NCBI GenBank assembly: GCA_002104945.1
Contig: MCFH01000083.1
Coordinates: 1 to 64,000 of the forward strand
Source of the DNA: Piromyces finnis finn
Lineage: Eukaryota > Fungi > Neocallimastigomycota
DNA: 64,000 nt
Reading direction: 5' to 3'
Both the position numbers and the translations under genes were made by a program. Positions 31,127-63,067 of this stretch are shown piece by piece; position 1 is the first letter of the stretch, and each line of letters opens with the position of its first letter. The notes under the pieces were generated by a model. That model worked only from the letters and a program-made list of their open reading frames with translations, was not told the origin of the DNA and ran no database searches.

Positions 31127-31172
<46 letters not shown>

Positions 31173-32366: not shown

Positions 32367-32388
32367 CTCCCCCAAAGTTATAAATTCA

Positions 32389-37842: not shown

Positions 37843-37876
37843 ATTAAAAAAAAACTTACTTAAATATAAGAGCAAT

Positions 37877-37890: not shown

Positions 37891-38125
37891 TGTCAGATAA
37901 ATTTAGTTTACACTTAAATTTATTTATAAAACTATTTGGGTTTTTATAATCTTTTATTTATTTATATTTATTTTATAATATAAATATTGTAACTTTCTTA
38001 AAATCTTTTTATTAAAAAATAACCAAAGAATAAAAATGTAGTACAATATTAATTTATAATTTTATAAAATACAAATACATAAAAAATACATAAAATATTA
38101 TTTTGGAATGTATTTTATTTTCACA
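37891..38125 (-). repeat. Copia 5' LTR (235 bp)
   Basis: Direct repeat of 32132-32366. Confidence 0.95.
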
Positions 38126-40320: not shown

Positions 40321-42613
40321 TTAGATTTTGTGTTTTCTAATACTTTTATTGAATTGAATTAATAATTCTTGATATCTTGGGTTACTTTCTATTACTGTAG
40401 CAGGAACCCAGTGCCAACTTAGGCGGTGTTTATAACGAATTTTATATTCGTAGCGTTTTTCTTTATAATTTGTCCTAAAGTCACCAATTTCTATAATTTC
40501 TGCATTAGTTTCTTTATATTTAAATCTATTTTTAAATTTATCTGGCGTAGATACATAAGGTTCAAGTTCCGATATGTGAAATACAGGGTGGTGTTTTGGA
40601 AAAGGTGATTTTGAAATATCTATTTTATAATTACCATTGTTTAAAACTTCTAAAACCTTGTAAGGACCATACTTACGAGGCGCTAGTTTGGCATTTTCAG
40701 TAGTAGCAAAAGCAGGAGGTGCATGAATCCAAACTTTTTGTCCTTCATTCAATTCAGGAGCAATAATTCTTTTCTTATCGGCAGCTCTTTTGTATAAATC
40801 TTGAGATCTAAGCAAAACATCTTTAACTAAAAGGAAATTTTTACTAACATCTTTAATGTATTTAAAGTTTGAATCAGAACCTTGAAACAAAAAGACATCA
40901 TCCATAGGTGGGTGGAATCCATAATTAATGAAAAATGGAGTTTGTTTTGTAGATTCATGAACTGTATTATTATAAACAAATTCAGCTAGATGTAACCATT
41001 CAATCCAGTCATCGTGGAAAAATGTTCTTGAATAGCAACGTAAATATTGTTCAATGAAAGAGTTACAACGTTCTACTTGACCAACGGTCTCATGGTGATC
41101 TGTGGTAGCTATTTTTGGCTTAACACGCAATTTTTCCATAATTTCTATCCATAAAGCACTAGTAAATTGTGTTCCTCTGTCCGTATAAATATCTGTAGGT
41201 AGTCCATGGAGTTTAAAAATATTTTTTAGGAAAGCTTTGGCAGTTTCTTCAGCTGTAGGTATTTCTTTGAACGGAATAAGGTGAATCATTTTTGAAAAGC
41301 GATCTACAACAACCATTATAACGGAAAACTTTTTTGATTCAGGGAGACCACAAAGAAAATCGATTTCAATAGATTTCCAAGGGCGATCAGGAATTTCTAA
41401 AGGTCTTAAAAGATCATATCTTTTATGTCTATTAACTTTATTTCTGGAACATTGTTCGCAAGAATTGACAAAATTTACGATATCTTGATGCATTTTGGGC
41501 CACCAAAAATTACGGTTAATTAGTTCTTCAGTTCTTCGAATACCTAAATGTCCAGCAGTAGCGTTATCATGGTACCTGGTTAAAATATCTACATGAAGTT
41601 TTTCTGGTACATAAATTAAATTATTATATAAAATTAAATTATTTTTTATTTTAAATTTTTCCATTTTTCTGAAAGGTCTGTAAAAGTAACCTTGATTAGC
41701 ATTATTAGGACTAAAGTAAAGATAAATATTATTCGCATTTTCATCATCCTTATAATTTTCTATTATTTGATCAATGAGAGAACCAACAATACCAACAAAA
41801 CATGGAGTATCGGGAACGTTTTTATAATCTAATATATGTTCTGGTTTAGGTTCAACATTATTTTTCTCGTAATCAGGTCTTCTTGATAAACTATCAGGTT
41901 TACCATTTTTTCTCCCTTGGCGGTATATTAATTGAAAATTATATTCTTGGAAAAATAAATGCCAACGATGTTGACGTTGGTTTCCGACTTTACCACCTAA
42001 GGTGTATAGAAGGTTTTTATGGTCAGTAAAAACGGTTACTTGGTATTTAGCACCTAGTAATAAATGTCTCCAGGTAGAAAATGCACATTTTATAGCTAAA
42101 AGTTCCTTTTCAGTAATTGAATAATTTAATTCAGCATTGTTTAAACATCTTGAATAATATGCTACAGGATGTAATTTGTTATCTTCATCCTTTTGAGAAA
42201 GTATACAACCAATGGCAAAATTACTAGCATCGCATTCGACAATAAATGGTTTGGTTGGATCTGGATGTAATAAAATAGGTGAAGAGATTAGTCTCTTTTT
42301 TAATTCTAAAAATGAGTTATTACATTTATCATTCCAATTAAAACTAGTATTTTTCTTTGTTAAATTGTGAAGCGGTTTAGCAATAGTAGCAAAATCTTTT
42401 ATAAATCTTCTATAATAGTTGCATAATCCAACAAAGCGTTGAACATCTTTTACACAATTAGGTGTAGGCCATTCTTGGACAGATTTAATTTTCTTTGGAT
42501 CAGTAGATATACCATTGCCTGATATAACGTGTCCTAAAAATTCAACTTCTGGCTTGTGAAATTCACATTTCTTTAATTTAGCAAATAAATTATTTTTGAG
42601 TAATGTTTGGAGA
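40321..42613 (-). CDS. Element A pol, C-terminal part: RT end, RNase H, integrase, divergent chromodomain
   Basis: ECDASNFAIG, TDHKNL, HDNATAGH..C..C, IEIDF/TDRGTQF/GQVER and YEYKIRYKH..W.PA motifs. The MSALH start in the ORF track comes from the B LTR. Confidence 0.9.
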
Positions 42614-43218
42614 TGTAATGCTGACACAGAAAGAATAGATTAGGATATCTATTCTATTACAATAACACAAAATTTAAAATAAAATAAAAAATTGTTTTAT
42701 TAAAAATATCTTTTATTATAATAGAAATTTTATTAATAACAATTACATCGATAAAATGATGAAAAATATCTTCTATTTATATTTTTCCTAAATACATTTA
42801 TATTATATTATAACTATTTATTTCTTATATATTATTATTTAAAATCTACACTAAAATCTTAATTATTAATAAATATTTAAACTATAACTATTTTTAGTAA
42901 AATACAATTGGCAATTCAAATTAAGTACTATTTAATTTGAATATGTGCCCATGTATTATTGATATATTAATCATTTATTATTTATCTATTTCTATAAAAA
43001 AAACAATACTAAAACTAGGGATTTAAATTGAGAATATTAATTTACTTGTTAAACATTAAAAATAAATTAATAATTTATTTTGTTTTAAACTTTAATTATT
43101 AATAAATAAATTATGTCTCATTTTCTTTTTCTGAATATAATTTGTGTAACTTAAACAATAATACTTGTGGCTTAAGTTACATTAAAGATATCAAACAGAG
43201 GCGTTTGATGTCTTTACA
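42614..43218 (-). repeat. B-1 3' LTR (605 bp)
   Basis: Reverse complement of 61182-61786; PPT AGAGAGAGAGA lies just upstream on the minus strand. Confidence 0.95.
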
Positions 43219-43254
43219 ATCTCTCTCTCTAAGTCGAGCTCCTGCGAGATTAAT

Positions 43255-46200
43255 TTATAAGGAATCTTTTCTCGAAGGAATTTCAATTACAAATGGTTGG
43301 TATCTGTGCTTGATTAGATTACCACCTTTATTCTTTCTTATTCTCATGGAGGAGTCATTCAACTTATGTTTTGACTTTTTAGAGTTTCTTTCGAACTCTT
43401 GTATTAATTGTTTGTCCGGGATCTGATCTTCAGAAACCCAAGTGGATTTGTCAAATCCTTTCCACGATAACTTATAAAATGTCTCACCATTAACAGATTT
43501 CATCTTCTCAATTTTTTCTGGAATTTTTTCAATTAAATCTGTGCTAAGATGAATATTTCTTTTCCTACTATTAGACCTATCTATAAACTCGTTTTCAAAG
43601 TATGGTTCTAACAATGAGACATGAAAGACTGGATGACATCTCATTGTCTTTGGGAGTTTCAATTTAAAAGCGAGAGAACTAACTTTTTCAATTATTTCAA
43701 ATGGACCAAGCATTTGAGGTGCTAATTTCTTCTTCAAGTTAGTTCTCGGAGAATCTTTCAATAACCATACCTTCTTTCCCACTTCAAATTCCGGGGGACT
43801 CATTCTTTTCATATCGGCATATTTCTTATATGTTTCTTTTGCTTTTTCTAAGTTTCCTTTTAATAATTTAAAGTTTTCACTCATATCAATTACTCTTTGT
43901 TCAGCTCTACTAGGTCTATCATTAGCCGGGATTTCCAAGCTGAACTTTGGATGAAAACCATAATTAGCAAAGAATGGGGATTGATTTATAGATTGCTGTA
44001 AAGTATTATTATAAGCAAATTCAGCAAACGGGATAAGATCAACCCAGTTATTCTGCTTTTTATTGATAAAACAACGGAAATATTGTTCTAATATGCCGTT
44101 CACCCTCTCCGTTTGACCATCTGTCTGCGGATGGTTAGCAGTTGACAATGAATGATTGATATTAAGAAGGTCACAAAGTCTTGACCAGAAATCAGAAGTA
44201 AATTGCGAGCCTCTATCAGAAATAATGGAATTAGGAAGACCATGCAAACGGAAGACATTGGCAATAAAAGCATCAGCAGCAATTGAAGCAGTAGGAAGAC
44301 AACGTAAAGGAATGGCGTGAGCAAATTTAGTAAATCTATCGACAACAACCATGAGAGTTGTCATATCTCTGGACTTAGGAAGATCAACAATAAAATCAAT
44401 AGAAATATCAGACCAGGGCCTACTGGGAGTGTCCAAAGGGGATAACAATCCATAAGGCTTATGTCTGGGGACTTTGGATTTGCAACAAGTCACGCAAGAT
44501 TTGATAAAAGATTTAACGTCTGAATGAAACCTTGGCCACCAAAAGTTTCTGGAAATCAGTTCAGTGGTTTTCTTAATACCGAAATGACCAGCAGCAACAG
44601 AATCATGATGAAGTTCCAAAACTCTTGTCCTAAGAGATTTAGGAACATAAATAAGATTATTATATAACAAAAATCCCTCGTTATCAATAATAACTTTATC
44701 AATATTTTTAATAGGTGCATTACATGCAGAACCATTCATTTTAAATTGGACAATAGAATTATACAAATCGTCATTTTTAAGTTCTAATAAAATAGAATCG
44801 ATTAACGGTTTGTTATCGCTATGATGAAACGAAATAGTAAGACAAGAAACATCAGAGTTAATAACATTCACTAAATGATCACTTCTACGAGACAGAATGT
44901 CAGGCTTACCAGATTTCTTACCAGCTCTATAAATGAGTTTAAAGTCAAATCTGGATAAGAACAAATTCCATCTAATTTGTCTCTGAGATAACATTTCAGG
45001 TTTTCTAGGAAATGTTAAGTTCTTGTGATCGGTATAAATTATGAACTGATGGCGTGCACCCTCTAAGTAATGACGCCATTCTTCAAGTGCAACTATAATG
45101 GCTAACAGTTCCTTGTCATATATAGGATAGTTTCTTTGACAACTCGTCAAACGTTTAGAAAGAAATGCAATGGGATGTAATTTGCCGTCAAACTCTTGAG
45201 AGAGAATAGCACCGACAGCATAATTACTAGCATCAGTTTCAACAATAAATTGTTTATTACTATCCGCATGTTTCAGAATAGGAGCTGACGTGAACAGAGA
45301 TTTTAATAAAATAAAAGCGTCCTGATCTTCTTTCACCCAGTTAAAAGCAACATTCTTTCTAGTGAGTTTGTGAAGAGGGTTTGCAATTTTAGCAAAGTCT
45401 TTAATAAAAATTCTGTAATAGTTGCATAAACCAATAAAAGACTGAACCTCTTTAACATTCTTGGGAACCGGCCAATCAAGAATTGTTTTAACTTTATTCT
45501 CATCCATTTGCAATCCATCCTTTGAAATGACATAACCAAGAAAAGTGGTTTTCTCAACATCAAACTCACATTTTTCTAATTTAACATAAAGATTATTTTC
45601 AAGTAGTTTCTTAAGTACCTTTTTAACATGCTCATGATGTTCTTCGATATTATTAGAATAAATAAGAATATCATCAATATATGAGATAACAAAATCGTCT
45701 AAATAGTCACTAAGGACATCGTTAATGAAGTGTTGAAAAGTTGCAGGTGCATTCTTTAATCCAAAAGGCATAACCAGATATTCAAAATGACCATACCTAG
45801 TACGAAAAGCCGTTTTGTATTCGTCACCTTCTTTAATACGAACAAGATTATAAGCGGATTTAAGGTCTAATTTGGTAAAAATCTTAGCATTTTTCACCCT
45901 ATCCAAAAGGTCACTTATTAAAGGTAAAGGATATGAATTACGAATTGTAATATTATTCAACCTTCTATAATCAATACAAAGTCTTAAGGAACCGTCCTTC
46001 TTTTTAACAAACAAAATTGGGGCACCAGCAGGAGACGATGATTTCCTAATAAAACCTTTATTTAAATTTTCATCTATATACTTTTTAAGTTCCTCTCTTT
46101 CAACTTCAGTTAATGGATACAAGGGTCCATAAAATAAAGTTGAATCATCCTTAAGTTTGATTTCACAATCATAAGGTCTATGAGGAGGTAACACTTCACA

Positions 46201-47844
46201 ATTTTTTTCGTTAAACACTTCACTAAATTCTAAATATTGGGTTGGTACGGCGACCAATTTATCTTTATTAATATTCTTTTCATTATTATTATTACTACAT
46301 GATTCATTATCATTATTACATGTTTCATTAATTTTCGTTACAATACATTTAACTTTTTTATTAAAACTAATATATTCATCATCGCTGTCATCTTCATCAT
46401 TAATGGTTCTAACAAGGCGGCCTTTAACATATTCTTTTTCTTCATGGTTTGGGACGGAGGGATCTACTTTCGGTTTTTTGGTTAAGCTTCGGTCGAGAAC
46501 ATCATGATCTAATTGATCATTCTTGGACTTCTTTCTTGGTTTTCTTTTTCTTTTACCTTTGTTACAGTGTCTGGCACAATAACCAGAACTAAAAGCGATT
46601 TTCTTAGAGTCGTAGAAAGCATTTGGATTATGCTTCTTTATCCACGGCAAACCAAGAATAACATCAACACCGGGGACTTGTAATCCATAAAGTTGAATTA
46701 CTTCGAAGTGATTTTTGCAACGGAGCATGCACTTCTCAGTCCTTTCCCAAACACTAACAACTCCATCACTAACACCTGAAACACGGAATGGTTCCACTTT
46801 TTCCAAATTAATACCAAGTTCTTCAGCAAGACTTGGATTAATGAAATTTAATTCAGAACCGGAATCAATTAAAACCTTAATCTTAACTTCCGAAACTTCA
46901 TTGGTACTCAAGTAAAAGTCCACAAGGTTTAAATCACTTTTCACTCCCTTGACTCCAACTTTGTAAATTTTTGGATTAACAATTTTTGGAGTCCTTTCTT
47001 TCACAATTCTTAACACTTTTCTGGGCTTTACTCTATTAGGACAATTAAATTTTAAATGTCCTGGTTGTTTACAAAGAAAACATAACCCCTTTTTCTTTTC
47101 TTCTTCAAAGTTGTCTATGTTTTCATTGTAATTTTTACTTGATCCTTGGATATTCACATACCTTTTGCGTTTATTTTCTCTACTAATTCTAAATACATCC
47201 ACATCCATAGGATCGTTAGCCCTTCTACCATTAAAATAAAATTCACTTAGAGAATTCCTTTTCATCATATCTTCAACTAAAATAGTTGAAGAAATCAATT
47301 GTTCAATTGAAGTTGGGTTTGATTCAATGAAAGCCAACTTCTCCCTAAGTGGTGGTAATAAACCTTTCAGAAACATGTAGATTTTTGCGCTGTCATTAAA
47401 GCTTGAATTTTGGCTAATACGTTGAAACTCGGTAATGTAATCTAATACCTGACCAAGTTTCCTTTGGCGAAGATTATCTAATTTACCGTTAGCTACAACG
47501 GTATCGTATCTATAACTGCCAAAATTAGCCTTCAACCTATCTACAAATTCATCATAATGGTTTAAAACCCCACTATTATTCTTCATCAACACTGAAGCCC
47601 ATTCCAAAGGTTTACCAGAGAAGTATGATATAACGAAGTCGACCTTGACTCGATCTGTATTATACAGTGTCGGTCGAGTACGAAATACCAACTCAACTCT
47701 GGTTAAAAATCCATCCAATTCTCTTTGTTTACCAGAAAATATCGGTGGAGCATTAATAATGTTCCCCGAATTCCCAGAAACACCCACAGTCCTATCACCC
47801 ATCTCTAAATTTAAATTTTCAAACTCACTAATTAAGTCCTCCAA
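43255..47844 (-). CDS. B-1 single-ORF gag-pol polyprotein with chromodomain
   Basis: DPMDVD, CFLCKQPGHLKFNC, LIDSGS, YIDD, ETDAS, HH..CC/DDE integrase and FYKLSWKGFDKSTW chromodomain; same translation as 56556-61145. Confidence 0.95.
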   Translation of the reverse strand: MEDLISEFENLNLEMGDRTVGVSGNSGNIINAPPIFSGKQRELDGFLTRVELVFRTRPTLYNTDRVKVDFVISYFSGKPLEWASVLMKNNSGVLNHYDEFVDRLKANFGSYRYDTVVANGKLDNLRQRKLGQVLDYITEFQRISQNSSFNDSAKIYMFLKGLLPPLREKLAFIESNPTSIEQLISSTILVEDMMKRNSLSEFYFNGRRANDPMDVDVFRISRENKRKRYVNIQGSSKNYNENIDNFEEEKKKGLCFLCKQPGHLKFNCPNRVKPRKVLRIVKERTPKIVNPKIYKVGVKGVKSDLNLVDFYLSTNEVSEVKIKVLIDSGSELNFINPSLAEELGINLEKVEPFRVSGVSDGVVSVWERTEKCMLRCKNHFEVIQLYGLQVPGVDVILGLPWIKKHNPNAFYDSKKIAFSSGYCARHCNKGKRKRKPRKKSKNDQLDHDVLDRSLTKKPKVDPSVPNHEEKEYVKGRLVRTINDEDDSDDEYISFNKKVKCIVTKINETCNNDNESCSNNNNEKNINKDKLVAVPTQYLEFSEVFNEKNCEVLPPHRPYDCEIKLKDDSTLFYGPLYPLTEVEREELKKYIDENLNKGFIRKSSSPAGAPILFVKKKDGSLRLCIDYRRLNNITIRNSYPLPLISDLLDRVKNAKIFTKLDLKSAYNLVRIKEGDEYKTAFRTRYGHFEYLVMPFGLKNAPATFQHFINDVLSDYLDDFVISYIDDILIYSNNIEEHHEHVKKVLKKLLENNLYVKLEKCEFDVEKTTFLGYVISKDGLQMDENKVKTILDWPVPKNVKEVQSFIGLCNYYRIFIKDFAKIANPLHKLTRKNVAFNWVKEDQDAFILLKSLFTSAPILKHADSNKQFIVETDASNYAVGAILSQEFDGKLHPIAFLSKRLTSCQRNYPIYDKELLAIIVALEEWRHYLEGARHQFIIYTDHKNLTFPRKPEMLSQRQIRWNLFLSRFDFKLIYRAGKKSGKPDILSRRSDHLVNVINSDVSCLTISFHHSDNKPLIDSILLELKNDDLYNSIVQFKMNGSACNAPIKNIDKVIIDNEGFLLYNNLIYVPKSLRTRVLELHHDSVAAGHFGIKKTTELISRNFWWPRFHSDVKSFIKSCVTCCKSKVPRHKPYGLLSPLDTPSRPWSDISIDFIVDLPKSRDMTTLMVVVDRFTKFAHAIPLRCLPTASIAADAFIANVFRLHGLPNSIISDRGSQFTSDFWSRLCDLLNINHSLSTANHPQTDGQTERVNGILEQYFRCFINKKQNNWVDLIPFAEFAYNNTLQQSINQSPFFANYGFHPKFSLEIPANDRPSRAEQRVIDMSENFKLLKGNLEKAKETYKKYADMKRMSPPEFEVGKKVWLLKDSPRTNLKKKLAPQMLGPFEIIEKVSSLAFKLKLPKTMRCHPVFHVSLLEPYFENEFIDRSNSRKRNIHLSTDLIEKIPEKIEKMKSVNGETFYKLSWKGFDKSTWVSEDQIPDKQLIQEFERNSKKSKHKLNDSSMRIRKNKGGNLIKHRYQPFVIEIPSRKDSL

Positions 47845-47900
47845 CGTTAAATATAAAACAAAATATAAAAAATGTTTTCTTACTACTGTTTCAAGTAAGT

Positions 47901-47951
<51 letters not shown>

Positions 47952-48061
47952 AAACTATTTCTACAAAAACGATGTTAGTTAATACAAAAGTTATTCAAAC
48001 TCGATCTGTTATACAGTGTCGAACAAGTTTTGTATTATATAATAATAATATTAATCAGAGT

Positions 48062-48102
<41 letters not shown>

Positions 48103-48110
48103 CTTCTGCT

Positions 48111-48247
48111 AGGGTAGCAACAAAGTTTCTTCAATACTCTCTTGAACCAAGGTAGCAACAAAGTTTCTTCAATAATCTCTTGAACCAAGGTAGCAACAAA
48201 ATTTCTTCAATAATCTCTTGAACCAAGGTAGCAACAAAGTTTCTTCG
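48111..48247 (-). repeat. 38-bp leader tandem repeat of B-1 (3 full units + partial)
   Basis: Unit is GAAGAAACTTTGTTGCTACCTTGGTTCAAGAGA(T/G)TATT on the minus strand. Confidence 0.9.
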
Positions 48248-48635
48248 GGCGGTAGATATCCTAACGTACTCTTGAAGTAGTTAGGTAATTGTTATTGTAA
48301 TGCTGACACAGAAAGAATAGATTAGGATATCTATTCTATTACAATAACACAAAATTTAAAATAAAATAAAAAATTGTTTTATTAAAAATATCTTTTATTA
48401 TAATAGAAATTTTATTAATAACAATTACATCGATAAAATGATGAAAAATATCTTCTATTTATATTTTTCCTAAATACATTTATATTATATTATAACTATT
48501 TATTTCTTATATATTATTATTTAAAATCTACACTAAAATCTTAATTATTAATAAATATTTAAACTATAACTATTTTTAGTAAAATACAATTGGCAATTCA
48601 AATTAAGTACTATTTAATTTGAATATGTGCCCATG

Positions 48636-49423
48636 TGTAAAGATATAATATATATCTTTAGATTATTTAATAATTAATTATTAATTATTAAATAATAAAT
48701 TAATATTTAGTAAAACTGATTATAAAATTTTTGAGTAAATTTTATGGAATAATTTAATAATAAATTATTTTATAATAATTCCGTTAAATTTAAATTAAGA
48801 TAAATATTTAAGTTTAAGGAATAAAAGAATTTTAATTAAATTTAAATATTTCAAATATTTTAAATAATTAAAATATTTTTCAAATACTTTTTATTTAGTT
48901 TTAGAATAGATTATACTTTTTTATTTAAATTTAGAATAGTTTAATAATTTTAACTTAGTTTTAAAAATAGATTTATTTATATTTCAATAGGAAATATATT
49001 AAGAATAGTATTGATAATATTAAATTAATTTATAGAAAATACATGGGCTTTATTCAATTTTGAGTTTACTCAAATTGAATTAAAAGTATAATGAATTAGT
49101 TTAGTTTAGTTCTGTTATTTTATTATTTAATTAAATTAGTTTTGTTTATTTTATATTAAATATATGTTTATTTAAATAGAATAATATATTAGAATATAAT
49201 TATGAAAAAATATAAATACATGTAATTTTTATTTGTTAAATCGATGTAATTGTTATTTTCAATTTTTTAATTATTAACTATTATATAGTTAATAATCTTT
49301 TTAAGAGTTTTAAATAAAATGATTTTTAAAATAAAAATTTAATGTTTTATTTTTTTATTTTTGTGTTAATAAAAATTGTTTTGTTTTAAGTATGAAATCT
49401 GTTTTAAATTTTATACTTTTACA
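48636..49423 (+). repeat. Element C 5' LTR (788 bp)
   Basis: Direct repeat of 54190-54977; contains the self-primer GTAATTGTTAT at 49246-49256. Confidence 0.93.
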
Positions 49424-49434
49424 ATAACAATTAC
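49424..49434 (+). promoter_or_regulatory. Element C self-priming PBS ATAACAATTAC
   Basis: Exact complement of 49246-49256 in its own LTR; same 11-mer as in B and B'. Confidence 0.8.
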
Positions 49435-49970
49435 CTTTTCTTATTAAAAAACACGTTTTATATTTAATAATAAAACAATTTTTATTTTCTGAAGTTACAA
49501 CATTGGGAATTGCTACCGTAGAAAATTTGGAACTTTTCGGAAATTTTTTCTCTTCGGAAATTTTTTTGTCTACTTGAGAAGCCTACCTTGTGGAACTATT
49601 TATGGTGTAACTTCTGTCAGTGTAACATCAATTTTGTGTTACCCTACTTTGTGAAATTCTAAATAAATTTTGTGAATACTACCTTGTGAAACCCTACTTT
49701 GTGGAACTATAATTGTGGAATTTTTACTTGTGGAACACTACCTTGTGAAATCCTCCCTTCGTGGAATTCTTTTGAACGAATCTCGTGGAACTTTGCTTGT
49801 GGAACATCTTTACTTTGTGAAACTTTCTTTTATATATTAGAATTGGAATGAGTGTAACTCTACTTTGTGAAACAATGAAATCTTTATATATAAAATCTAT
49901 CTGTAATACTAATAGAAATATATTTATGAAATACTCTTGTTTTTAAATTGATGAAACTCTTTTAAAATTA

Positions 49971-51500
49971 AATTTAATTATAATATACTATAAAAAGAAC
50001 TCGCTCGACACCGTTTGATAGGATAGAGTCTGAGCGACATCTTTTATACATAGTATATTATAAATTAAATTGGATATATACAATTAAAAGAGTAAATTAA
50101 ATCAAAAAATTAATTGCAAAGTAAGAAAATTAAAACTTATTTAAAAAGGAAGAAAATTAAGAAAAAGTTAATAAAATTTTAAAATTATTTAAATATATTG
50201 AGAAATAAGTGAATTAGTATGTTGATTTCACTTATTTGAATGAATTATTAATTGTTATTTTGAAATGAACTTATTATATACTTAAAAGACCTCGCTCGAC
50301 ACCGTTTGATAGGATAGAGTCTGAGCGACATCTTTTAAACATGGTATATAATAATTATAGAATTATTTAAAATATATTGTATGAAAATTAAAATTTTGAT
50401 ATTTATTAATTAAAATGAATTTGAGAAATAAGTGAATTAAAATGTAAATATCACTTATTGGAAAAAGTTATTTTATTGAAATATATTTATTATATATTAT
50501 AAAAGACCTCGCTCGACACCTTTTGATAGGATAGAGTCTGAGCGACATCTTTTAGACGTAGTATATAATAATTTTAGATTTATTTAAAATACATTGAGAA
50601 ATATGAAAATTAAAATTTTGATATTTATTAATTAAAAGTAGTTGAGGAATAAGTTATCTTATTGAAATAAATTTATTATATACTATAAAAGACCTCGCTC
50701 GACACCTTTTGATAGGATAGAGTCTGAGCGACATCTTTAGATATTGTATATAATAAATTAAATTGAATATATAATTAAAACAAATTAAAATTTGATTATA
50801 TAATAAGTAAATTTGAAATGAATTTATTATATACTTAAAAGACCTCGCTCGACACCTTTTGATAGGATAGAGTCTGAGCGACATCTTTTAGATATAGTAT
50901 ATAATAAATTAAAATTAAGAAATGAATTAAAATTTTACAATAAAAGTAAAAGTAATAAATGTGTAAAGTTAGTTAAATAAATAAATTATTCTTTATTATA
51001 ATAAGATTTCGATGACACCTTTTTAGAGGACAGAGTCAGATCGACATCTTTTTGGGAAATAGTATATAATAAATTAAATTGAAAATACTATAAATTAATT
51101 TAACTTGAAAATTTGAAATATATAATTTAATTTAATGAAGTTAGAAAATGATTTGATATTTAAAATTACTTTTAAAATAATTTAATTTTATACTAAATAA
51201 ATAATTCGATGACACCTTTTCTTTAAAGGATAGAGTCAGGTCGACTTCTTTAATATGAAGATACAATATAAATTCGATTAACTAACTAAATAAATAAAAT
51301 ATATTCAAGGATTATATATTATTAATTAAATTAGATAAATACAATTAAGAAGTTTATTAAATAATATATTAAAATATTATGAAGTAATACGAAAACGAGC
51401 TTAAAAAAAAAATAATTTAATTTCATTGTAATAACATGTTTTATACTTTATAAAGAATTCGCTGACACCAGTTGATAGGATGGAGTTGACTTCTTTTATA
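49971..51500 (+). repeat. Array of 8 structured hairpin units in element C (candidate cis-acting RNA element)
   Basis: Cores start near 49993, 50284, 50501, 50687, 50837, 51003, 51206 and 51452. Consensus of units 1-5 is AAAAGA(C/A)CTCGCTCGACACC(G/T)TTTGATAGGATAGAGTCTGAGCGACATCTTT; units 6-8 diverge but largely keep the pairing. Confidence 0.92.
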
Positions 51501-52029
51501 TAAAGGTGTATTTTATATAACTGAATATTTGACTAAATAGAAAATTCTTAATAATTAGAATATAAATTTAAAGCATTTTTAATTTGATTTGAATTTATCA
51601 ACAAAAGTCAATACAAATTTAGTTATTTAAAAAGTTATACATTTATTAAAAAAAAAATTATTTTTATATTTAGTAAATTAAGATAATTTGATTGTAATAG
51701 TTTATTAAATAATTTATTAAACAAATGATTAAGAATAAATAATTAAAATAATTTGAATTCAATATGAGGAGGTTTTACAAATTTAGTTGTTAAATAAATT
51801 ATGTTTTTTATATTTAATAAATTAAAATAAATTAATTAAATAAAGAATTTTTTATAAAGAAGTTATTGTATATCTAGTTAATAAGTTTATATTTTTATTA
51901 AGAAGTAAGTTTTATATTTAAAAGATTCAAATAACTTGAATAAATTAATATAGTAGTTTTGATTGAATAATTATAAAGTTAAATAAATATATAATAAGAA
52001 ATGAGTGTAATATTTTTTATTCTTAATAA

Positions 52030-54155
52030 TATGATGGTAGTGAAATCAGAGCTAGAAAATTAATCTATTCTGGATCTGTTCTTAATTTCATTTATCTGGA
52101 TTTTATAAAGAATAAAATGAAAATAAAAAGAAACAAGAAAGAAGAACAATTCAGTAATGAAATAATAAATTTGAAAATTCCAATGTTTTAAAAAGAAACT
52201 TAATGAATTACTGAATTGTGGAGGATTATAACAAAATGTTAAGTACATTTGTCCTATGGAAAATAATGTTATCTAAATAATTTTAATTATAATAAATGTA
52301 ATTTAAAAAATAAATATGATTGTAATGTATTAGTATTGTAGAATTAGAAATAGCTATAATAGAAATTAATGAGGAATAGTTTTAGTAATAGTAACAACTT
52401 GATAGTATAATAGTTAGTATTAATAATAATTAAAAAAAAAATAGAATTAATAAATACAACAAATGAAAAAAAAAATATAATAAAATGTAATAAATAGAAT
52501 AAAGTAATAAATAGAATAAGTTAATAAATATGATAAATGTAATAAATAGAATAAATTAATAAATATAATAAGTTAATAAATATGATAAATGTAATAAATA
52601 TAATGAATAAAACAAATATAAATTAATGTAATATGTATAATAATTATAAGAGTTTTTAATAAATGAATAGTTTTTATGTACTTAATAAAACGAACTTTAT
52701 AAAGGAAAAAAAAAAGATTTTAATCTTTATACAATTCTTTTTAATGGAAGTATAATGAGATTGATAACTATAATTACTATATATTGATTGTAGGAAATTA
52801 AATGATATAATTATTGAAATTCATATATTCCTTTAATCAATAAATAAGATAAATGGAGTAAAATATGTTTTTAAACTAAATTTAAATATATCAATAGCTT
52901 AGTAAGAATTAAATAAAGTGATGAATTTAAAATTGCTTTAATCTTTATATGGCATTTTTAATTTATTATCATACCTTTTATTCAAAAATGTATCAGCTCT
53001 ATTTTAATATTTTAAGTGATGCTTTTGATGAAGTATTTTAATTACTTTATAATTAATAATATTTAGTACAACATTATGTATATGTTTATATCAATTCTGT
53101 GATGTTTTATTGATGATATTTAAATTTATGAATTCATTGTTAAATTTTTAAAAAAGAAATAATTTTATAATACCATATATTGATAAATTATAAAATAAAA
53201 GAGAATTATAAATATGCTAAAAGTATTTTAAAAACGTCTAAAAATGATAAATTTGTTAATTAAATTATAGTATTTACTTGATGACTTGATACCACTTTTG
53301 TTTATTTAATAATAAGATTAAAAAAAAATAGTGGTATAGTTAATATAATTATTGAATGATGTTTTTCCATTATTATTAATGAATGTTAATTTTTTTACAA
53401 ATATTTTATTACTAAGAATTTTGTTATATTTATTTGCTTAATAATAACCTTTAAAAAAAATAAGTTCCACTTGGTTTAAAGCTTGTACAATAATAAAAAA
53501 CATTTAATACTCTTTAAATGCTATTTTCTTTATAATTTTAGAATTGTCTGTTTGATATATTTAATATAAATTTTATCACAGACTTTTCATTTAAATGAGA
53601 GGGTGAACGAGATATTGTTCCAATATCTCCGTTGGTTAATAAAATCGAATTGATTGTTATATTGGAATCTACTTATAATATTTTATTGTAATCAATCAAT
53701 CAATTTCAATTTTATACAAACTATGGATTTAATTTAAAATTTAATATTGAAATTTCTTCAGCTAATAAATCAAAGAAAGTTGAACAGATTATTATAAGTA
53801 TTAATAAAAAGTATTAAAATTGTAAAATAGAATTTTAATCATGCATAAGAAGATTATAAAAGTCATGATGATCAAGAAGAATTGAATAAATAAAAATTTG
53901 AAACTTAAGTAAATGTTTTGTTTTGAATACTTAAATAAAAATGTTAATAGAAAACAATTTATAAATAACCATAATCTGAATATAAAAACAAATGGATTCT
54001 TGATGATTAAGTTTTAGATAAATTATTAGAATTATGTATAAGTAACAAGAATGATAATAAGAGTATAAATAAATTAAATACTTATATATTTTTTTAACAA
54101 TGTTATGATTTAGAAAAAGTAGTAACCATTTGTTATTTAAATTTCTTCAAGAAAA
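52030..54155 (+). pseudogene. Decayed Gypsy pol remnants in element C
   Basis: LIYSGSVLNFI at 52060 (cf. B LIDSGSELNFI); DEFKIA at 52920; KNVSALF* at 52984 (cf. KNAPATFQ); FIDDI*IY at 53106; ERVNEILFQYLR at 53597; YTNYGFNLKFNIEI at 53713; *PFVI*ISSRK at 54123 (cf. QPFVIEIPSRK). Confidence 0.8.
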
Positions 54156-54189
54156 TAATCTCGCAGGAGCTCGACTTAAAGGGCGAGAT

Positions 54190-54977
54190 TGTAAAGATAT
54201 AATATATATCTTTAGATTATTTAATAATTAATTATTAATTATTAAATAATAAATTAATATTTAGTAAAACTGATTATAAAATTTTTGAGTAAATTTTATG
54301 GAATAATTTAATAATAAATTATTTTATAATAATTCCGTTAAATTTAAATTAAGATAAATATTTAAGTTTAAGGAATAAAAGAATTTTAATTAAATTTAAA
54401 TATTTCAAATATTTTAAATAATTAAAATATTTTTCAAATACTTTTTATTTAGTTTTAGAATAGATTATACTTTTTTATTTAAATTTAGAATAGTTTAATA
54501 ATTTTAACTTAGTTTTAAAAATAGATTTATTTATATTTCAATAGGAAATATATTAAGAATAGTATTGATAATATTAAATTAATTTATAGAAAATACATGG
54601 GCTTTATTCAATTTTGAGTTTACTCAAATTGAATTAAAAGTATAATGAATTAGTTTAGTTTAGTTCTGTTATTTTATTATTTAATTAAATTAGTTTTGTT
54701 TATTTTATATTAAATATATGTTTATTTAAATAGAATAATATATTAGAATATAATTATGAAAAAATATAAATACATGTAATTTTTATTTGTTAAATCGATG
54801 TAATTGTTATTTTCAATTTTTTAATTATTAACTATTATATAGTTAATAATCTTTTTAAGAGTTTTAAATAAAATGATTTTTAAAATAAAAATTTAATGTT
54901 TTATTTTTTTATTTTTGTGTTAATAAAAATTGTTTTGTTTTAAGTATGAAATCTGTTTTAAATTTTATACTTTTACA
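54190..54977 (+). repeat. Element C 3' LTR (788 bp)
   Basis: Preceded by AATCTCGCAGGAGCTCGACTTAAAGGGCGAGAT. Confidence 0.93.
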
Positions 54978-55247
54978 CCATGTATTATTGATATATTAAT
55001 CATTTATTATTTATCTATTTCTATAAAAAAAACAATACTAAAACTAGGGATTTAAATTGAGAATATTAATTTACTTGTTAAACATTAAAAATAAATTAAT
55101 AATTTATTTTGTTTTAAACTTTAATTATTAATAAATAAATTATGTCTCATTTTCTTTTTCTGAATATAATTTGTGTAACTTAAACAATAATACTTGTGGC
55201 TTAAGTTACATTAAAGATATCAAACAGAGGCGTTTGATGTCTTTACA

Positions 55248-55384: not shown

Positions 55385-55990
55385 TGTAAAGACATCAAAC
55401 GCCTCTGTTTGATATCTTTAATGTAACTTAAGCCACAAGTATTATTGTTTAAGTTACACAAATTATATTCAGAAAAAGAAAATGAGACATAATTTATTTA
55501 TTAATAATTAAAGTTTAAAACAAAATAAATTATTAATTTATTTTTAATGTTTAACAAGTAAATTAATATTCTCAATTTAAATCCCTAGTTTTAGTATTGT
55601 TTTTTTTATAGAAATAGATAAATAATAAATGATTAATATATCAATAATACATGGGCACATATTCAAATTAAATAGTACTTAATTTGAATTGCCAATTGTA
55701 TTTTACTAAAAATAGTTATAGTTTAAATATTTATTAATAATTAAGATTTTAGTGTAGATTTTAAATAATAATATATAAGAAATAAATAGTTATAATATAA
55801 TATAAATGTATTTAGGAAAAATATAAATAGAAGATATTTTTCATCATTTTATCGATGTAATTGTTATTAATAAAATTTCTATTATAATAAAAGATATTTT
55901 TAATAAAACAATTTTTTATTTTATTTTAAATTTTGTGTTATTGTAATAGAATAGATATCCTAAATCTATTCTTTCTGTGTCAGCATTACA
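55385..55990 (+). repeat. B-2 5' LTR
   Basis: TGTAAAGAC...GCATTACA; self-primer GTAATTGTTAT at 55857-55867. Confidence 0.95.
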
Positions 55991-56001
55991 ATAACAATTA
56001 C
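55991..56001 (+). promoter_or_regulatory. B-2 self-priming PBS ATAACAATTAC
   Basis: Abuts the LTR, lacks TGG and is complementary to 55857-55867. Confidence 0.8.
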
Positions 56002-56039
56002 CTAACTACTTCAAGAGTACGTTAGGATATCTACCGCCC

Positions 56040-56290
56040 GAAGAAACTTTGTTGCTACCTTGGTTCAAGAGATTATTGAAGAAATTTTGTTGCTACCTTG
56101 GTTCAAGAGATTATTGAAGAAACTTTGTTGCTACCTTGGTTCAAGAGATTATTGAAGAAACTTTGTTGCTACCTTAGTTCAAGAGAGTATTGAAGAAACT
56201 TTGTTGCTACCTTGGTTCAAGAGAGTATTGAAGAAACTTTGTTGCTACCTTGGTTCAAGAGAGTATTGAAGAAACTTTGTTGCTACCCTA
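56040..56290 (+). repeat. 38-bp leader tandem repeat of B-2 (6 full units + partial)
   Basis: Units start at 56040, 56078, 56116, 56154, 56192 and 56230, with a partial unit at 56268. Confidence 0.92.
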
Positions 56291-56297
56291 GCAGAAG

Positions 56298-56338
<41 letters not shown>

Positions 56339-56363
56339 ACTCTGATTAATATTATTATTATAT

Positions 56364-56419
56364 AATACAAAACTTGTTCGACACTGTATAACAGATCGAG
56401 TTTGAATAACTTTTGTATT
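56364..56419 (+). promoter_or_regulatory. B leader hairpin, same fold as the C array unit
   Basis: AATACAAAA-C-TTGTTC-GAC-A-CTGT-ATA-ACAG-ATCGA-GTT-T-GAATAA-C-TTTTGTATT. Confidence 0.7.
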
Positions 56420-56448
56420 AACTAACATCGTTTTTGTAGAAATAGTTT

Positions 56449-56499
<51 letters not shown>

Positions 56500-56555
56500 A
56501 CTTACTTGAAACAGTAGTAAGAAAACATTTTTTATATTTTGTTTTATATTTAACG

Positions 56556-59500
56556 TTGGAGGACTTAATTAGTGAGTTTGAAAATTTAAATTTAGAGATG
56601 GGTGATAGGACTGTGGGTGTTTCTGGGAATTCGGGGAACATTATTAATGCTCCACCGATATTTTCTGGTAAACAAAGAGAATTGGATGGATTTTTAACCA
56701 GAGTTGAGTTGGTATTTCGTACTCGACCGACACTGTATAATACAGATCGAGTCAAGGTCGACTTCGTTATATCATACTTCTCTGGTAAACCTTTGGAATG
56801 GGCTTCAGTGTTGATGAAGAATAATAGTGGGGTTTTAAACCATTATGATGAATTTGTAGATAGGTTGAAGGCTAATTTTGGCAGTTATAGATACGATACC
56901 GTTGTAGCTAACGGTAAATTAGATAATCTTCGCCAAAGGAAACTTGGTCAGGTATTAGATTACATTACCGAGTTTCAACGTATTAGCCAAAATTCAAGCT
57001 TTAATGACAGCGCAAAAATCTACATGTTTCTGAAAGGTTTATTACCACCACTTAGGGAGAAGTTGGCTTTCATTGAATCAAACCCAACTTCAATTGAACA
57101 ATTGATTTCTTCAACTATTTTAGTTGAAGATATGATGAAAAGGAATTCTCTAAGTGAATTTTATTTTAATGGTAGAAGGGCTAACGATCCTATGGATGTG
57201 GATGTATTTAGAATTAGTAGAGAAAATAAACGCAAAAGGTATGTGAATATCCAAGGATCAAGTAAAAATTACAATGAAAACATAGACAACTTTGAAGAAG
57301 AAAAGAAAAAGGGGTTATGTTTTCTTTGTAAACAACCAGGACATTTAAAATTTAATTGTCCTAATAGAGTAAAGCCCAGAAAAGTGTTAAGAATTGTGAA
57401 AGAAAGGACTCCAAAAATTGTTAATCCAAAAATTTACAAAGTTGGAGTCAAGGGAGTGAAAAGTGATTTAAACCTTGTGGACTTTTACTTGAGTACCAAT
57501 GAAGTTTCGGAAGTTAAGATTAAGGTTTTAATTGATTCCGGTTCTGAATTAAATTTCATTAATCCAAGTCTTGCTGAAGAACTTGGTATTAATTTGGAAA
57601 AAGTGGAACCATTCCGTGTTTCAGGTGTTAGTGATGGAGTTGTTAGTGTTTGGGAAAGGACTGAGAAGTGCATGCTCCGTTGCAAAAATCACTTCGAAGT
57701 AATTCAACTTTATGGATTACAAGTCCCCGGTGTTGATGTTATTCTTGGTTTGCCGTGGATAAAGAAGCATAATCCAAATGCTTTCTACGACTCTAAGAAA
57801 ATCGCTTTTAGTTCTGGTTATTGTGCCAGACACTGTAACAAAGGTAAAAGAAAAAGAAAACCAAGAAAGAAGTCCAAGAATGATCAATTAGATCATGATG
57901 TTCTCGACCGAAGCTTAACCAAAAAACCGAAAGTAGATCCCTCCGTCCCAAACCATGAAGAAAAAGAATATGTTAAAGGCCGCCTTGTTAGAACCATTAA
58001 TGATGAAGATGACAGCGATGATGAATATATTAGTTTTAATAAAAAAGTTAAATGTATTGTAACGAAAATTAATGAAACATGTAATAATGATAATGAATCA
58101 TGTAGTAATAATAATAATGAAAAGAATATTAATAAAGATAAATTGGTCGCCGTACCAACCCAATATTTAGAATTTAGTGAAGTGTTTAACGAAAAAAATT
58201 GTGAAGTGTTACCTCCTCATAGACCTTATGATTGTGAAATCAAACTTAAGGATGATTCAACTTTATTTTATGGACCCTTGTATCCATTAACTGAAGTTGA
58301 AAGAGAGGAACTTAAAAAGTATATAGATGAAAATTTAAATAAAGGTTTTATTAGGAAATCATCGTCTCCTGCTGGTGCCCCAATTTTGTTTGTTAAAAAG
58401 AAGGACGGTTCCTTAAGACTTTGTATTGATTATAGAAGGTTGAATAATATTACAATTCGTAATTCATATCCTTTACCTTTAATAAGTGACCTTTTGGATA
58501 GGGTGAAAAATGCTAAGATTTTTACCAAATTAGACCTTAAATCCGCTTATAATCTTGTTCGTATTAAAGAAGGTGACGAATACAAAACGGCTTTTCGTAC
58601 TAGGTATGGTCATTTTGAATATCTGGTTATGCCTTTTGGATTAAAGAATGCACCTGCAACTTTTCAACACTTCATTAACGATGTCCTTAGTGACTATTTA
58701 GACGATTTTGTTATCTCATATATTGATGATATTCTTATTTATTCTAATAATATCGAAGAACATCATGAGCATGTTAAAAAGGTACTTAAGAAACTACTTG
58801 AAAATAATCTTTATGTTAAATTAGAAAAATGTGAGTTTGATGTTGAGAAAACCACTTTTCTTGGTTATGTCATTTCAAAGGATGGATTGCAAATGGATGA
58901 GAATAAAGTTAAAACAATTCTTGATTGGCCGGTTCCCAAGAATGTTAAAGAGGTTCAGTCTTTTATTGGTTTATGCAACTATTACAGAATTTTTATTAAA
59001 GACTTTGCTAAAATTGCAAACCCTCTTCACAAACTCACTAGAAAGAATGTTGCTTTTAACTGGGTGAAAGAAGATCAGGACGCTTTTATTTTATTAAAAT
59101 CTCTGTTCACGTCAGCTCCTATTCTGAAACATGCGGATAGTAATAAACAATTTATTGTTGAAACTGATGCTAGTAATTATGCTGTCGGTGCTATTCTCTC
59201 TCAAGAGTTTGACGGCAAATTACATCCCATTGCATTTCTTTCTAAACGTTTGACGAGTTGTCAAAGAAACTATCCTATATATGACAAGGAACTGTTAGCC
59301 ATTATAGTTGCACTTGAAGAATGGCGTCATTACTTAGAGGGTGCACGCCATCAGTTCATAATTTATACCGATCACAAGAACTTAACATTTCCTAGAAAAC
59401 CTGAAATGTTATCTCAGAGACAAATTAGATGGAATTTGTTCTTATCCAGATTTGACTTTAAACTCATTTATAGAGCTGGTAAGAAATCTGGTAAGCCTGA

Positions 59501-61145: not shown

Positions 61146-61181
61146 ATTAATCTCGCAGGAGCTCGACTTAGAGAGAGAGAT

Positions 61182-61786
61182 TGTAAAGACATCAAACGCC
61201 TCTGTTTGATATCTTTAATGTAACTTAAGCCACAAGTATTATTGTTTAAGTTACACAAATTATATTCAGAAAAAGAAAATGAGACATAATTTATTTATTA
61301 ATAATTAAAGTTTAAAACAAAATAAATTATTAATTTATTTTTAATGTTTAACAAGTAAATTAATATTCTCAATTTAAATCCCTAGTTTTAGTATTGTTTT
61401 TTTTATAGAAATAGATAAATAATAAATGATTAATATATCAATAATACATGGGCACATATTCAAATTAAATAGTACTTAATTTGAATTGCCAATTGTATTT
61501 TACTAAAAATAGTTATAGTTTAAATATTTATTAATAATTAAGATTTTAGTGTAGATTTTAAATAATAATATATAAGAAATAAATAGTTATAATATAATAT
61601 AAATGTATTTAGGAAAAATATAAATAGAAGATATTTTTCATCATTTTATCGATGTAATTGTTATTAATAAAATTTCTATTATAATAAAAGATATTTTTAA
61701 TAAAACAATTTTTTATTTTATTTTAAATTTTGTGTTATTGTAATAGAATAGATATCCTAATCTATTCTTTCTGTGTCAGCATTACA
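61182..61786 (+). repeat. B-2 3' LTR
   Basis: Preceded by the PPT AGAGAGAGAGA at 61170-61180. Confidence 0.95.
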
Positions 61787-63067
61787 CAGGGGCATTTCTT
61801 AGACCAAAAGGCATTACTAAATATTCATAGTGACCATATTTAGTTCTAAAAGCTGTCTTATATTCGTCTCCTTCACGAATACGCACTAAATTGTAAGCAG
61901 AACGAAGATCTAATTTTGAAAAGAATTTAGCACCTTTCACTCTTTCGATAATATCAGTAATTAGAGGAAGTGGGTAAGAATTGCGAATTGTAACTGCATT
62001 TAATTTTTTGTAATCAATACAAAGACGTAACGATCCATCCTTCTTTTTCTGAAATAAAACAGGATAACCAGCTGGAGATTCAGATGGTCTAATGAATCCT
62101 TTCTTGAGATTTTCATCTATGTATTCTTTAAGAACTAGAGATTCATCTTCAGATAGAGGATATATAGGACCATAATGTAAAGAAGCATCTTTTTGTAAAA
62201 CGATTTTACAATCCGTTAGCCTATGTGGTGGTAGTTTATCAGCCTTAACCTTGCTGAAAACTTCCGCTAAATCACGATATGGTTCTGGTACTTCTTCTAA
62301 TTTGAAGTCTTCTTCATTATCATCTTCATCATCAGTATTATAATCTTTTTCTCTATTAGCTAAAAATGAGTGAATAAAGTAATTATAGCTGAAATTTTGA
62401 TATTTTGGTTTAGAGCAATTTTTCAAATTATTAAAAGATGTATTGGAAGTTAATTTATTATGATTAATGTTTTTAATTTTTAAATTTTTGGATTTATTCA
62501 ATCGGTTTTTATTAATTTTATATATAATTTTATTAGAATTTAATTTTTTAAAATTGTTAAAATTTAAACTTGAATATACAAAATTTTTATTATAATTAAA
62601 ATGTAGTTGATATTTGTGTAAAAATTTATTGCCTAATAACAAATCTATTGGAAGATTTTTAATAATTAGAAATTTTTCTTTAAAAGTAATTAAAAATTTT
62701 GAATGATTAATATAGATAGTAGTCTTAAAATATAAGAAGGTGTATGTATCAATAAATATTGAACCACTAATTCCATTTATTTCAATTGAGTGTAATAATT
62801 TGTGTGGTTTTAGTTTTAATTTATTGACCAAGTTGATTGAAATAAAGTTGCAATATGAGCCACTATCTAAAATTAAATTGTATTGATTTTTATTAATTGA
62901 ATTTTTTAAATCATAAAGTTTGTTTAATTTAATTGGGATAAAAAATTTTAAGTTGAAAAATGTTGTAGGCAATTTTTTATTTATTTTAGAGTCATATGTA
63001 GGAAAGTTGTAATGTATTATTTTTGTATTATGAACTCTCTTAGACTCTCTTGAGAGTTCATTTCTTA
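61787..63067 (-). CDS. Element A pol N-terminal part (protease, RT start), entered by a -1 frameshift
   Basis: LILDSGS protease, [17 protein letters not shown] and [14 protein letters not shown]. The frame is open from the slippery site to the TTG at 62972. Confidence 0.85.

Follow-up and report, generated by a model that had tools for sequence, protein, structure and literature searches.

The DNA analysed here comprises positions 1–64,000 of the forward strand of contig MCFH01000083.1 from Piromyces finnis finn (assembly GCA_002104945.1); this whole stretch is referred to as the window. It is very AT-rich, with a G+C content of about 17–33% across its length. The layout of its retroelements was obtained from a self-comparison of the window together with the list of open reading frames (ORFs). 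Element B is an intact Ty3/gypsy retrotransposon, and its inverted copy B-1 is interrupted in its 5′ long terminal repeat (LTR) by element C, a non-autonomous LTR retrotransposon that carries an array of RNA hairpins. A single hairpin of the same kind lies in the 5′ leader of related retroelements. The hairpin is a new conserved cis-acting leader RNA element that has been amplified in a non-autonomous element. Feature coordinates and model scores are given in Table 1.

Element C and its hairpin array

Element C has the make-up of a large retrotransposon derivative (LARD): paired LTRs with a target-site duplication, no gag or pol, and a priming site and polypurine tract in common with the autonomous family. 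The uninterrupted target can be read in the other B LTR (...gtgcccatgtattattg). The internal region (49424–54189) holds no ORF of 120 amino acids or more, and the only coding trace recovered by tblastn of C was a decayed integrase remnant. This remnant is 36–46% identical to the C-terminal part of the integrase of B and of all relatives, rising to 57–62% over a 21-residue piece. A low-stringency blastn comparison of C with B was uninformative and was dominated by AT-rich low-complexity matches. The parts left in C act in cis only, namely the LTRs, priming site, polypurine flank, leader repeats and hairpins. An earlier reading made from the letters alone (the sequence-only reading) had called C non-autonomous; the missing ORFs, identical LTRs, CCATG duplication and cis-sequences of the clade bear this out. 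C is a genuine non-autonomous LTR element and, because its LTRs are identical, one that transposed recently.

Eight spaced copies of a hairpin of about 64 nt lie in C at 49989–51504. Two covariance models were used to score them. The first (R1) was built from ten instances in the window, and the second (R2) was built only from the hairpins of relatives and then run on the window. Over the 64 kb, R1 scored the known sites in C, B and B-1 at 52–85 bits, with the next best match at 21.6 bits. R2 gave 37–55 bits for units C1–C7, 51 bits for the gag copy of B, 31 bits for the leader copy of B and 16.5 bits for unit 8, and all else scored 15 bits or less. Both models placed the C units and the B copies above everything else in the window. 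The reverse complements of the C sites scored 13–19 bits with R1, compared with 76–85 bits for the forward strand. A strict motif pattern matched seven times in the window and never in 100 shuffled sequences.

Folding with ViennaRNA gave an outer A/U stem (P1), a 2 × 2 mismatch, a stem of 5–6 bp (P2), a 3′ bulge of 1–2 nt, a 3 bp helix (P3), a 1 × 5 internal loop (A opposite A-N-N-G-A) and an apical stem starting with C-G. Folds, alignment and model all recover the structure described in the sequence-only reading. Its eight units all lie where it had placed them, but the 3′ strand of P2 is deleted in unit 8, so that the array consists of seven intact units and a remnant. The outer AT stem that it had ascribed to every unit is long in units 1–5 (15 bp in unit 5) and absent in this long form from units 6–8. 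Its apical stems do start with C-G, but a G·A mismatch replaces the third apical pair in units 1 and 2. A second, AT-rich hairpin (AAAUAAGUGAA...UUCACUUAUUU) was observed in the spacers after units 1 and 2 (50198–50249 and 50421–50472); its counterpart after unit 3 is degenerate.

The extended hairpins of units 1–5 are very stable, with folding energies of −28 to −33 kcal/mol and z scores of −5 to −7.8 (a 108-nt fold of unit C1 gave −32.6 kcal/mol and z = −7.8). With their outer stems they reach about 35–40 bp, so that they could be read as Dicer substrates, MITE-like foldbacks (miniature inverted-repeat transposable elements) or self-cleaving ribozymes. Non-autonomous LTR elements with ribozymes exist, as in the retrozymes of plants. 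This alternative is highly improbable. Conservation within the clade lies in the core and loops, the outer stems of the relatives are short, and 100-nt folds of units 6–8 gave z scores of only −0.2 to −0.7. Neither a ribozyme nor a miRNA family matched at E values up to 10, and a single hairpin of 45 nt is unlike the architecture of any known self-cleaving class. Separate insertions of MITEs or foldbacks into unrelated flanks were rejected, since neighbouring units share spacer segments (families D5–D7), which points to tandem duplication instead. Also rejected were a kink-turn internal loop, which needs an A·G pair where the sequence has A·C and which conflicts with the Watson–Crick covariation in P3, and C/D-box snoRNA and hammerhead assignments, for which proper boxes or a core are missing (the best Rfam match, snR75, scored 14.5 bits against a threshold of 40).

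History of the array

Among units C1–C5 the core is 98% identical (the cores differ at one base), the 25-nt stem flanks are 83–86% identical and the sequence 25–75 nt away is 60–64% identical, compared with a random baseline of 56 ± 6%. Tandem Repeats Finder reported a period of 217 nt at 85% identity, and the flanks upstream of C3 and C4 share 96% identity along 93 nt. These values accord with a reading in which one hairpin is functional and the eightfold array has no copy-number function, having arisen by tandem duplication, or by template switching at a stable hairpin in the course of reverse transcription, where no coding constraint applies. Decay of unit 8 accords with it as well, as does a 38-nt leader repeat that differs between the 99.9% identical copies of B (3.5 copies in B-1 at 48113–48246, 6.5 in B at 56040–56287), from which it follows that leader repeats expand easily here. 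Set against this, units C6 and C7 are older and have diverged (about 86% identity in the core) with every helix kept by compensatory or wobble changes, and the cores are conserved while the distal spacers are near the random baseline. An independent second copy in the gag of B, at a cost to the protein, further suggests that, in this genome, having more than a single copy is favoured. An array that is a by-product alone is a real but rather doubtful prospect.

Covariation and strand

Covariation was assessed in a joint alignment of 18 distinct sequences by a pair-count test against shuffled and slid partners. A MAFFT alignment had mis-registered the P2 strands of C6, C7 and the gag copy of B, and the R1 alignment of the B gag copy was apparently mis-registered as well; realignment was therefore performed with the relatives-only model, and RNAalifold was used in addition. 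Of all pair cells, 88.2% are paired, compared with 69.3% after shuffling (none of 500 shuffles reached the observed value) and 29–42% when partners were slid by 1–3 columns. The covariation score was 0.50, compared with 0.16 for shuffled and at most 0.14 for slid partners, and double compensatory changes were found in 11 of the 18 pairs. RNAalifold recovered P1–P3 unaided, with 10 of 14 pairs compensated. The proposal that pairing is kept while the sequence changes therefore stands.

P2 occurs as UCGACC/GGUCGA, UCGACA/UGUCGA, UCGUC/GACGA, UCGCUC/GAGCGA, UCGAU/AUCGA and UUGUUC/GAAUAA, and P3 as GAC/GUC, GUC/GAC, (G)CAC/GUG(C), UAUC/GAUA, UGAC/GUCA and GGC/GCC. In the alignment, which excludes unit 8 and the leader copy of B, the invariant features are the UCG that starts P2 and the CGAC that ends it, the unpaired A, the C-G pairs that border the loop and, in its 5-nt strand, the G at position 4. 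The fifth position of this strand is A except in one relative (the forms are AUAGA, ACAGA, AGAGA, UCAGA, AUCGA and AUAGC). G·U pairs, which would be A·C on the other strand, occur in P2 of C7, in P2 and P3 of the B leader copy and several more times in the joint alignment. Together with the one-sided internal loop, they point to plus-strand RNA.

These data bear on whether the repeats are palindromic transcription-factor sites that act at the DNA level as a downstream enhancer, multiplied to boost the transcription of C. The P2 core TCGAC...GTCGA is indeed palindromic, and sites downstream of the LTR and within gag recall the way in which the enhancer of yeast Ty1 is laid out in its leader and gag. 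However, the stems covary to unrelated pairs (P3 has five or more forms), which is the signature of pairing between nucleic acids and not of a protein that reads a fixed half-site. The loop is conserved on one strand only, G·U pairs are present and the model is strand-asymmetric. Very little credence can be given to DNA-level sites.

The hairpin in related retroelements

Relatives were found through the gag region of B, to which they are 45–53% identical; all come from gut or rumen metagenomes, and their contigs were scanned with R1. Nine related Ty3/gypsy lineages each have exactly one hairpin in the 5′ leader wherever leader sequence is available (L001, L002, L003, L004/L005, L008, L009/L010, L012 and L013). 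All matches are on the coding strand. The hairpin lies 79–161 nt before the gag ATG in L001, L002, L008, L009, L010, L012 and L013, in which gag is on the same contig. In L003 and L004/L005 the match is downstream of pol, past the 3′ LTR, so that the distance to the ATG is not measurable; in L004 a long poly(A) run, where the contig wraps, separates the hairpin from gag. Two of these carriers, L009 and L010, were AT-rich retroelement leaders added by a strict pattern scan of the metagenome collection; a third candidate from that scan, L011, was rejected as a GC-rich chance match.

Conservation in nine leaders makes a stronger case for a real structured element than the letters of the window had given. 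The family pattern, run over 596 Gb of bacterial and archaeal genomes, matched only a retroelement contig binned as a bacterium, and pattern scans of viral contigs gave no matches. This contig (L013/L014; SVBD01000027.1) is a eukaryotic Ty3/gypsy contig with a leader hairpin deposited in an Erysipelotrichaceae metagenome-assembled genome, probably through a binning error. The host of the clade is probably the anaerobic gut fungi. In Rfam 15 no match in the window reached the gathering level, and at E values up to 10 the array, the leader and gag copies of B and the L001 leader gave only unrelated sub-threshold matches. The copy number is one in the autonomous relatives and two in B, and the array of C comprises seven intact units and a remnant.

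Hairpins of element B

Element B has a gag-pol ORF in which Pfam identified gag, protease, reverse transcriptase, RNase H, integrase and a Tf2-1-type SH3 domain, in the order gag, protease, reverse transcriptase, RNase H, integrase that characterizes Tf1-like Ty3/gypsy elements. A chromodomain is recorded for relatives of B and was undetected in the B ORF by Pfam. The Gag of the whole clade has one CCHC knuckle, located in B at Gag residues 255–268.

The sequence-only reading had placed the fold in the leader and in gag of B, mirrored in B-1, and all four sites were recovered by R1. The leader hairpin, with runs of 34 and 41 A on either side (A34 and A41), is the positional homologue of the single copy of the relatives. 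At the position of the second copy, the gag of B can be aligned codon by codon with that of the relatives, none of which carries the motif there. The gag copy has the same B-specific apical stem as the leader copy, and a mostly basic, near-conserved arginine has been lost in B (KVRF to KVDF) to the GUCGAC that forms P2. The gag copy appears to have arisen through in-frame substitutions that the relatives do not have. The codon-wise alignment, B-type apical stem and KVRF to KVDF change suggest either that a second copy was selected for at the RNA level or that the leader copy was transferred by conversion.

Leader architecture and the origin of C

In L001 the LTR end (...TTTACA) is followed by ATAACAATTACC, about eight repeats of the CUACYGCUUUUGGA type, a T run, the hairpin, a spacer of about 80 nt and gag. 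This order recurs in B, where the repeats are 38 nt long, contain CUACCUUGG and are followed by A34, the hairpin and A41, and in C, where CUACYUUGUG repeats precede the array. Because the leader order is the same in L001, B and C, the array occupies the position of the single leader hairpin.

The repeats themselves are a second conserved, repeated leader motif and a candidate cis-element. Those of C have counterparts in the 38-nt repeats of B and in the CTACYGCTTTTGGA repeats of L001 (6470–6600, about eight copies), and a CUACC/CUACY...UUGG core upstream of the hairpin is common to B, C and L001. In several lineages, long internal poly(A) runs lie on both sides of the leader hairpin or after it, namely in B (A34 at 56303–56336 and A41 at 56457–56497), L004 (1–126, at least 126 A, and 6314–6388), L012 (about 520–535) and L013 (about 92–104).

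An 11-nt LTR segment, GTAATTGTTAT (49246–49256 in C, 55857 in B, also in L001), is complementary to the post-LTR site ATAACAATTAC. This complementarity is the signature of Tf1-type self-priming, which B, C and their relatives are predicted to use. C and B have their LTR termini and about 30 nt before the 3′ LTR in common, and conservation throughout the clade is high in the stretch that precedes the 3′ LTR (Table 1). In C and L001 an inverted repeat in this region, AUCUCGC...GCGAGAU, encloses GAGCUCGACUU. As GAGCUCGACUU repeats the 5′ P2 strand of the hairpin, pairing between the 5′ and 3′ ends of the RNA is possible.

Such pairing belongs to a broader alternative, in which the hairpin is a genuine cis RNA element with a role other than packaging or dimerization: recruitment of a host factor for export, localization or stability, reverse transcription or strand transfer, or 5′–3′ pairing. 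Structure, position and retention in C would fit any function needed in a trans-mobilized RNA. The GAGCTCGACTT just before the polypurine tract repeats the P2 5′ strand (CTCGAC) and could pair with the P2 3′ strand, the CTCGACTT segment before the tract is a possible pairing partner, and leader poly(A) tracts bracket the hairpin in several lineages. The evidence, however, fits packaging equally, and Rfam gave no match to a known export or stability element. Strict 5′–3′ pairing is weakened by units C1–C5, in which P2 is now UCGCUC/GAGCGA while the 3′ flank is still CTCGAC. On balance we consider another cis role unlikely, though a serious contender.

The apical loop of C (CCGUUUGAUAGG) is identical to that of L001 and unlike that of B (CUGUAUAACAG), and the sequence after the priming site and the polypurine flank (AAAGGGCGAGAU) are also closer to L001 than to B. 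Because all three match L001 better, C descends from a clade member other than B. The integrase remnant is about equally distant from every clade member (at the identities given above). The sequence-only reading had taken B to be the helper of C; the helper could be B or any co-resident family with these cis-sequences.

Neighbouring elements

B and B-1 lie head to head, with 137 bp between them after removal of C, and both outer ends of this composite are 3′ LTRs. The composite is nested in the pol of a more distant gypsy element, the halves of which flank it. Integration of an inverted dimer, an inverted duplication or an artefact of the assembly could account for the arrangement. A third B-family copy begins near the end of the window with a 5′ LTR (96.6% identical to the 5′ LTR of B and 98.5% to the 3′ LTR of B) and a priming site; it runs off the window, and its leader hairpin would fall past the window end. 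Elsewhere in the window there is a direct segmental duplication of 14.2 kb, with 36-nt-period tandem arrays within it, and an intact Ty1/copia element, from which the hairpin motif is absent.

Table 1. Features of the window with their positions, strands and, for hairpins, covariance-model scores.
Feature	Positions	Strand	Remarks
Element C, LARD-like non-autonomous LTR retrotransposon	48636–54977	+	6.3 kb; 788-bp direct repeats, 100% identical
C 5′ LTR	48636–49423	+	TGTAAAGA...TTTTACA
C 3′ LTR	54190–54977	+	100% identical to 5′ LTR
Target-site duplication CCATG, left copy	48631–48635	.	window reads ccatg, then C, then ccatg
Target-site duplication CCATG, right copy	54978–54982	.	5-bp duplication
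Priming site of C, ATAACAATTACC	49424–49435	+	self-priming type; identical in relative L001
Priming site of B, ATAACAATTACC	55991–56002		self-priming type
CTACYTTGTG(G/A)AA repeats in C leader	49583–49870	+	at least 7; upstream of array
Unit C1	49989–50052	+	R1 85.2 bits, R2 54.8 bits
Unit C2	50280–50343	+	R1 81.9 bits, R2 47.1 bits
Unit C3	50497–50560	+	R1 83.7 bits, R2 48.9 bits
Unit C4	50683–50746	+	R1 76.0 bits, R2 46.3 bits
Unit C5	50833–50896	+	R1 84.4 bits, R2 50.1 bits
Unit C6	50996–51059	+	R1 61.3 bits, R2 36.7 bits; P2 UCGAU/AUCGA, 2-nt bulge
Unit C7	51193–51259	+	R1 62.0 bits, R2 42.1 bits; P2 UCGAU/GUCGA with U·G pair, apical stem CCUUU/AAAGG
Unit C8, broken	51446–51504	+	R1 57.2 bits with 5 unpaired pairs, R2 16.5 bits; P2 3′ strand deleted
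Decayed integrase remnant in C	53579–53808	+	about 75 amino acids; tblastn
Polypurine-tract region of C, AATCTCGCAGGAGCTCGACTTAAAGGGCGAGAT	54157–54189	+	conserved with B 61147–61181 and L001 5411–5443
Element B, intact Ty3/gypsy	55385–61786	+	606-bp LTRs; gag-pol ORF of 1529 amino acids (56556–61145)
B leader hairpin	56362–56424	+	R1 64.2 bits, R2 30.6 bits; about 170 nt before first ATG
B gag hairpin	56711–56775	+	R1 52.1 bits, R2 51.2 bits; in frame (codons for RTRPTLYNTDRVKVDF)
B-1, inverted copy of B	42614–48669	-	99.9% identical to B
B-1 leader hairpin	47976–48038	-	identical copy; R1 scan
B-1 gag hairpin	47625–47689	-	identical copy; R1 scan
Distant gypsy element, RNase H–integrase half	40324–42627	-
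Distant gypsy element, protease–reverse transcriptase half	61785–62972	-
Third B-family copy, start	63264–64000	+	5′ LTR and priming site
Segmental duplication, direct	1–14166 and 17949–32131		14.2 kb, 99.7% identity
Tandem arrays within the duplication	5405–5929 and 23348–23880		36-nt period
Ty1/copia element, intact	32132–38125	-	235-bp LTRs, 100% identical; ORF of 1828 amino acids

Function of the hairpin

The explanation that we favour combines a cis-acting leader hairpin, its recognition by Gag and its multiplication in a trans-mobilized element C. A plus-strand RNA hairpin would act in cis in the 5′ leader of a Tf1-like, self-priming Ty3/gypsy clade, and its stacked helices (P1 outside, P2 of 5–6 bp, P3 of 3–4 bp and the apical stem), bulge and 1 × 5 loop would form the recognition module. 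Autonomous relatives have the one leader copy, and B has this copy together with the in-frame one in gag. C, having lost all coding capacity, has been transposed in trans very recently and bears its seven intact and one broken hairpins in place of the single leader hairpin. Gag, through its single CCHC knuckle, would recognize the hairpin for selection of the genomic RNA, for dimerization or for both, and extra copies would raise the chance of capture, which would make the array adaptive for the parasite. The probability of this explanation as a whole is put at roughly one half.

Its parts carry different weights. The structure, conservation, position and copy numbers of the hairpin are established, as are the non-autonomy and recent mobility of C. 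Like Psi-type signals, the hairpin lies in the 5′ leader (in B also in gag) and has a conserved secondary structure. Recognition by Gag or its nucleocapsid (NC) part in packaging and/or dimerization is favoured by the single CCHC knuckle found throughout the clade and by the invariant unpaired G of the hairpin; this assignment is held tentatively, at slightly less than an even chance. That C is non-coding and yet keeps and multiplies the hairpin argues against a role limited to the translation of gag, since such a parasite would be expected to retain only sequences required for the transcription, capture, reverse transcription and integration of its RNA. That the copy number is adaptive for the parasite through a greater chance of capture is possible but rather unlikely. 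Less likely again is an arms race in which copy number is under selection between parasite and autonomous elements, with a single leader copy as the ancestral state, C having multiplied it and B having responded or competed through a gag copy that cost it a conserved residue.

Several points weigh against the favoured explanation. The function of the hairpin is deduced from its position and retention alone. The pair-count test is partly circular, since its alignment had been fitted to the model and the copies in the window had served to train the model by which the relatives were found; the stems were nevertheless free to vary, and RNAalifold agrees. The independent lineages number only about ten. 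Units C1–C5 are near-identical and some spacers (the 217-nt period and the 93-nt flank) are recent duplicates. Part of the array is accordingly young, and could be a neutral expansion by slippage or template switching that was homogenized by conversion. Transcription has weak support: three sequencing runs hold 71–74% of the 31-mers of the array, and their 'RNA?' labels are guesses.

Comparison with known systems and significance

The closest parallel is barley BARE2, which lacks its own Gag, keeps the priming, dimerization and packaging signals of BARE1 and is packaged in the particles of its partner (PMC3735527). In C, too, the priming site, polypurine flank and leader hairpin of its clade persist, and transposition was recent. 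It differs in that BARE2 has the larger part of its ORF left and one set of signals, whereas C, a candidate for packaging of this kind, has no ORF and seven to eight hairpins. VL30 RNA, which is non-coding, is efficiently packaged and reverse transcribed by the proteins of its murine leukaemia virus (MLV) helper (PMC4997597). It resembles C as a non-coding LTR retroelement, but this is a vertebrate retroviral system with another RNA motif and tRNA priming. The alphavirus packaging signal in the nsP1 region is made up of several stem-loops in which a short GGG motif recurs, and it lies partly or wholly in coding sequence (PMC6283419). Its several equivalent hairpins recall the array, and its coding position parallels the in-frame gag copy of B; virus, capsid protein and motif are, however, unrelated, and the multiplicity is that of an autonomous genome and not of a parasite.

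Likeness to Tf1 and sushi elements lies in the 11-nt LTR segment complementary to the post-LTR site and in the Tf2-1-type SH3 domain after the integrase. The self-priming structure of Tf1 is at the priming site, whereas the hairpin described here is separate from it and several hundred nucleotides downstream (about 370 nt in B). Literature searches, which were not exhaustive, found no equivalent leader hairpin. Nor did they yield a description of this motif or of any non-autonomous LTR element in which a leader hairpin is multiplied.

The hairpin defines a new family of RNA motifs, and its copy numbers form an unusual natural series: one, two, and seven with a remnant. The cis-acting RNA signals of LTR retrotransposons are poorly defined beyond a few yeast, plant and retroviral models, and the competition of non-coding elements for helper proteins has so far mostly been inferred. 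For gut metagenomes, in which some contigs of the clade are binned as bacteria (L013/L014), and for very AT-rich fungal genomes, the hairpin provides an annotation marker for the clade. The copy-number series makes the dose-dependence of RNA capture directly testable, and offers a natural test case for competition by a parasitic element.

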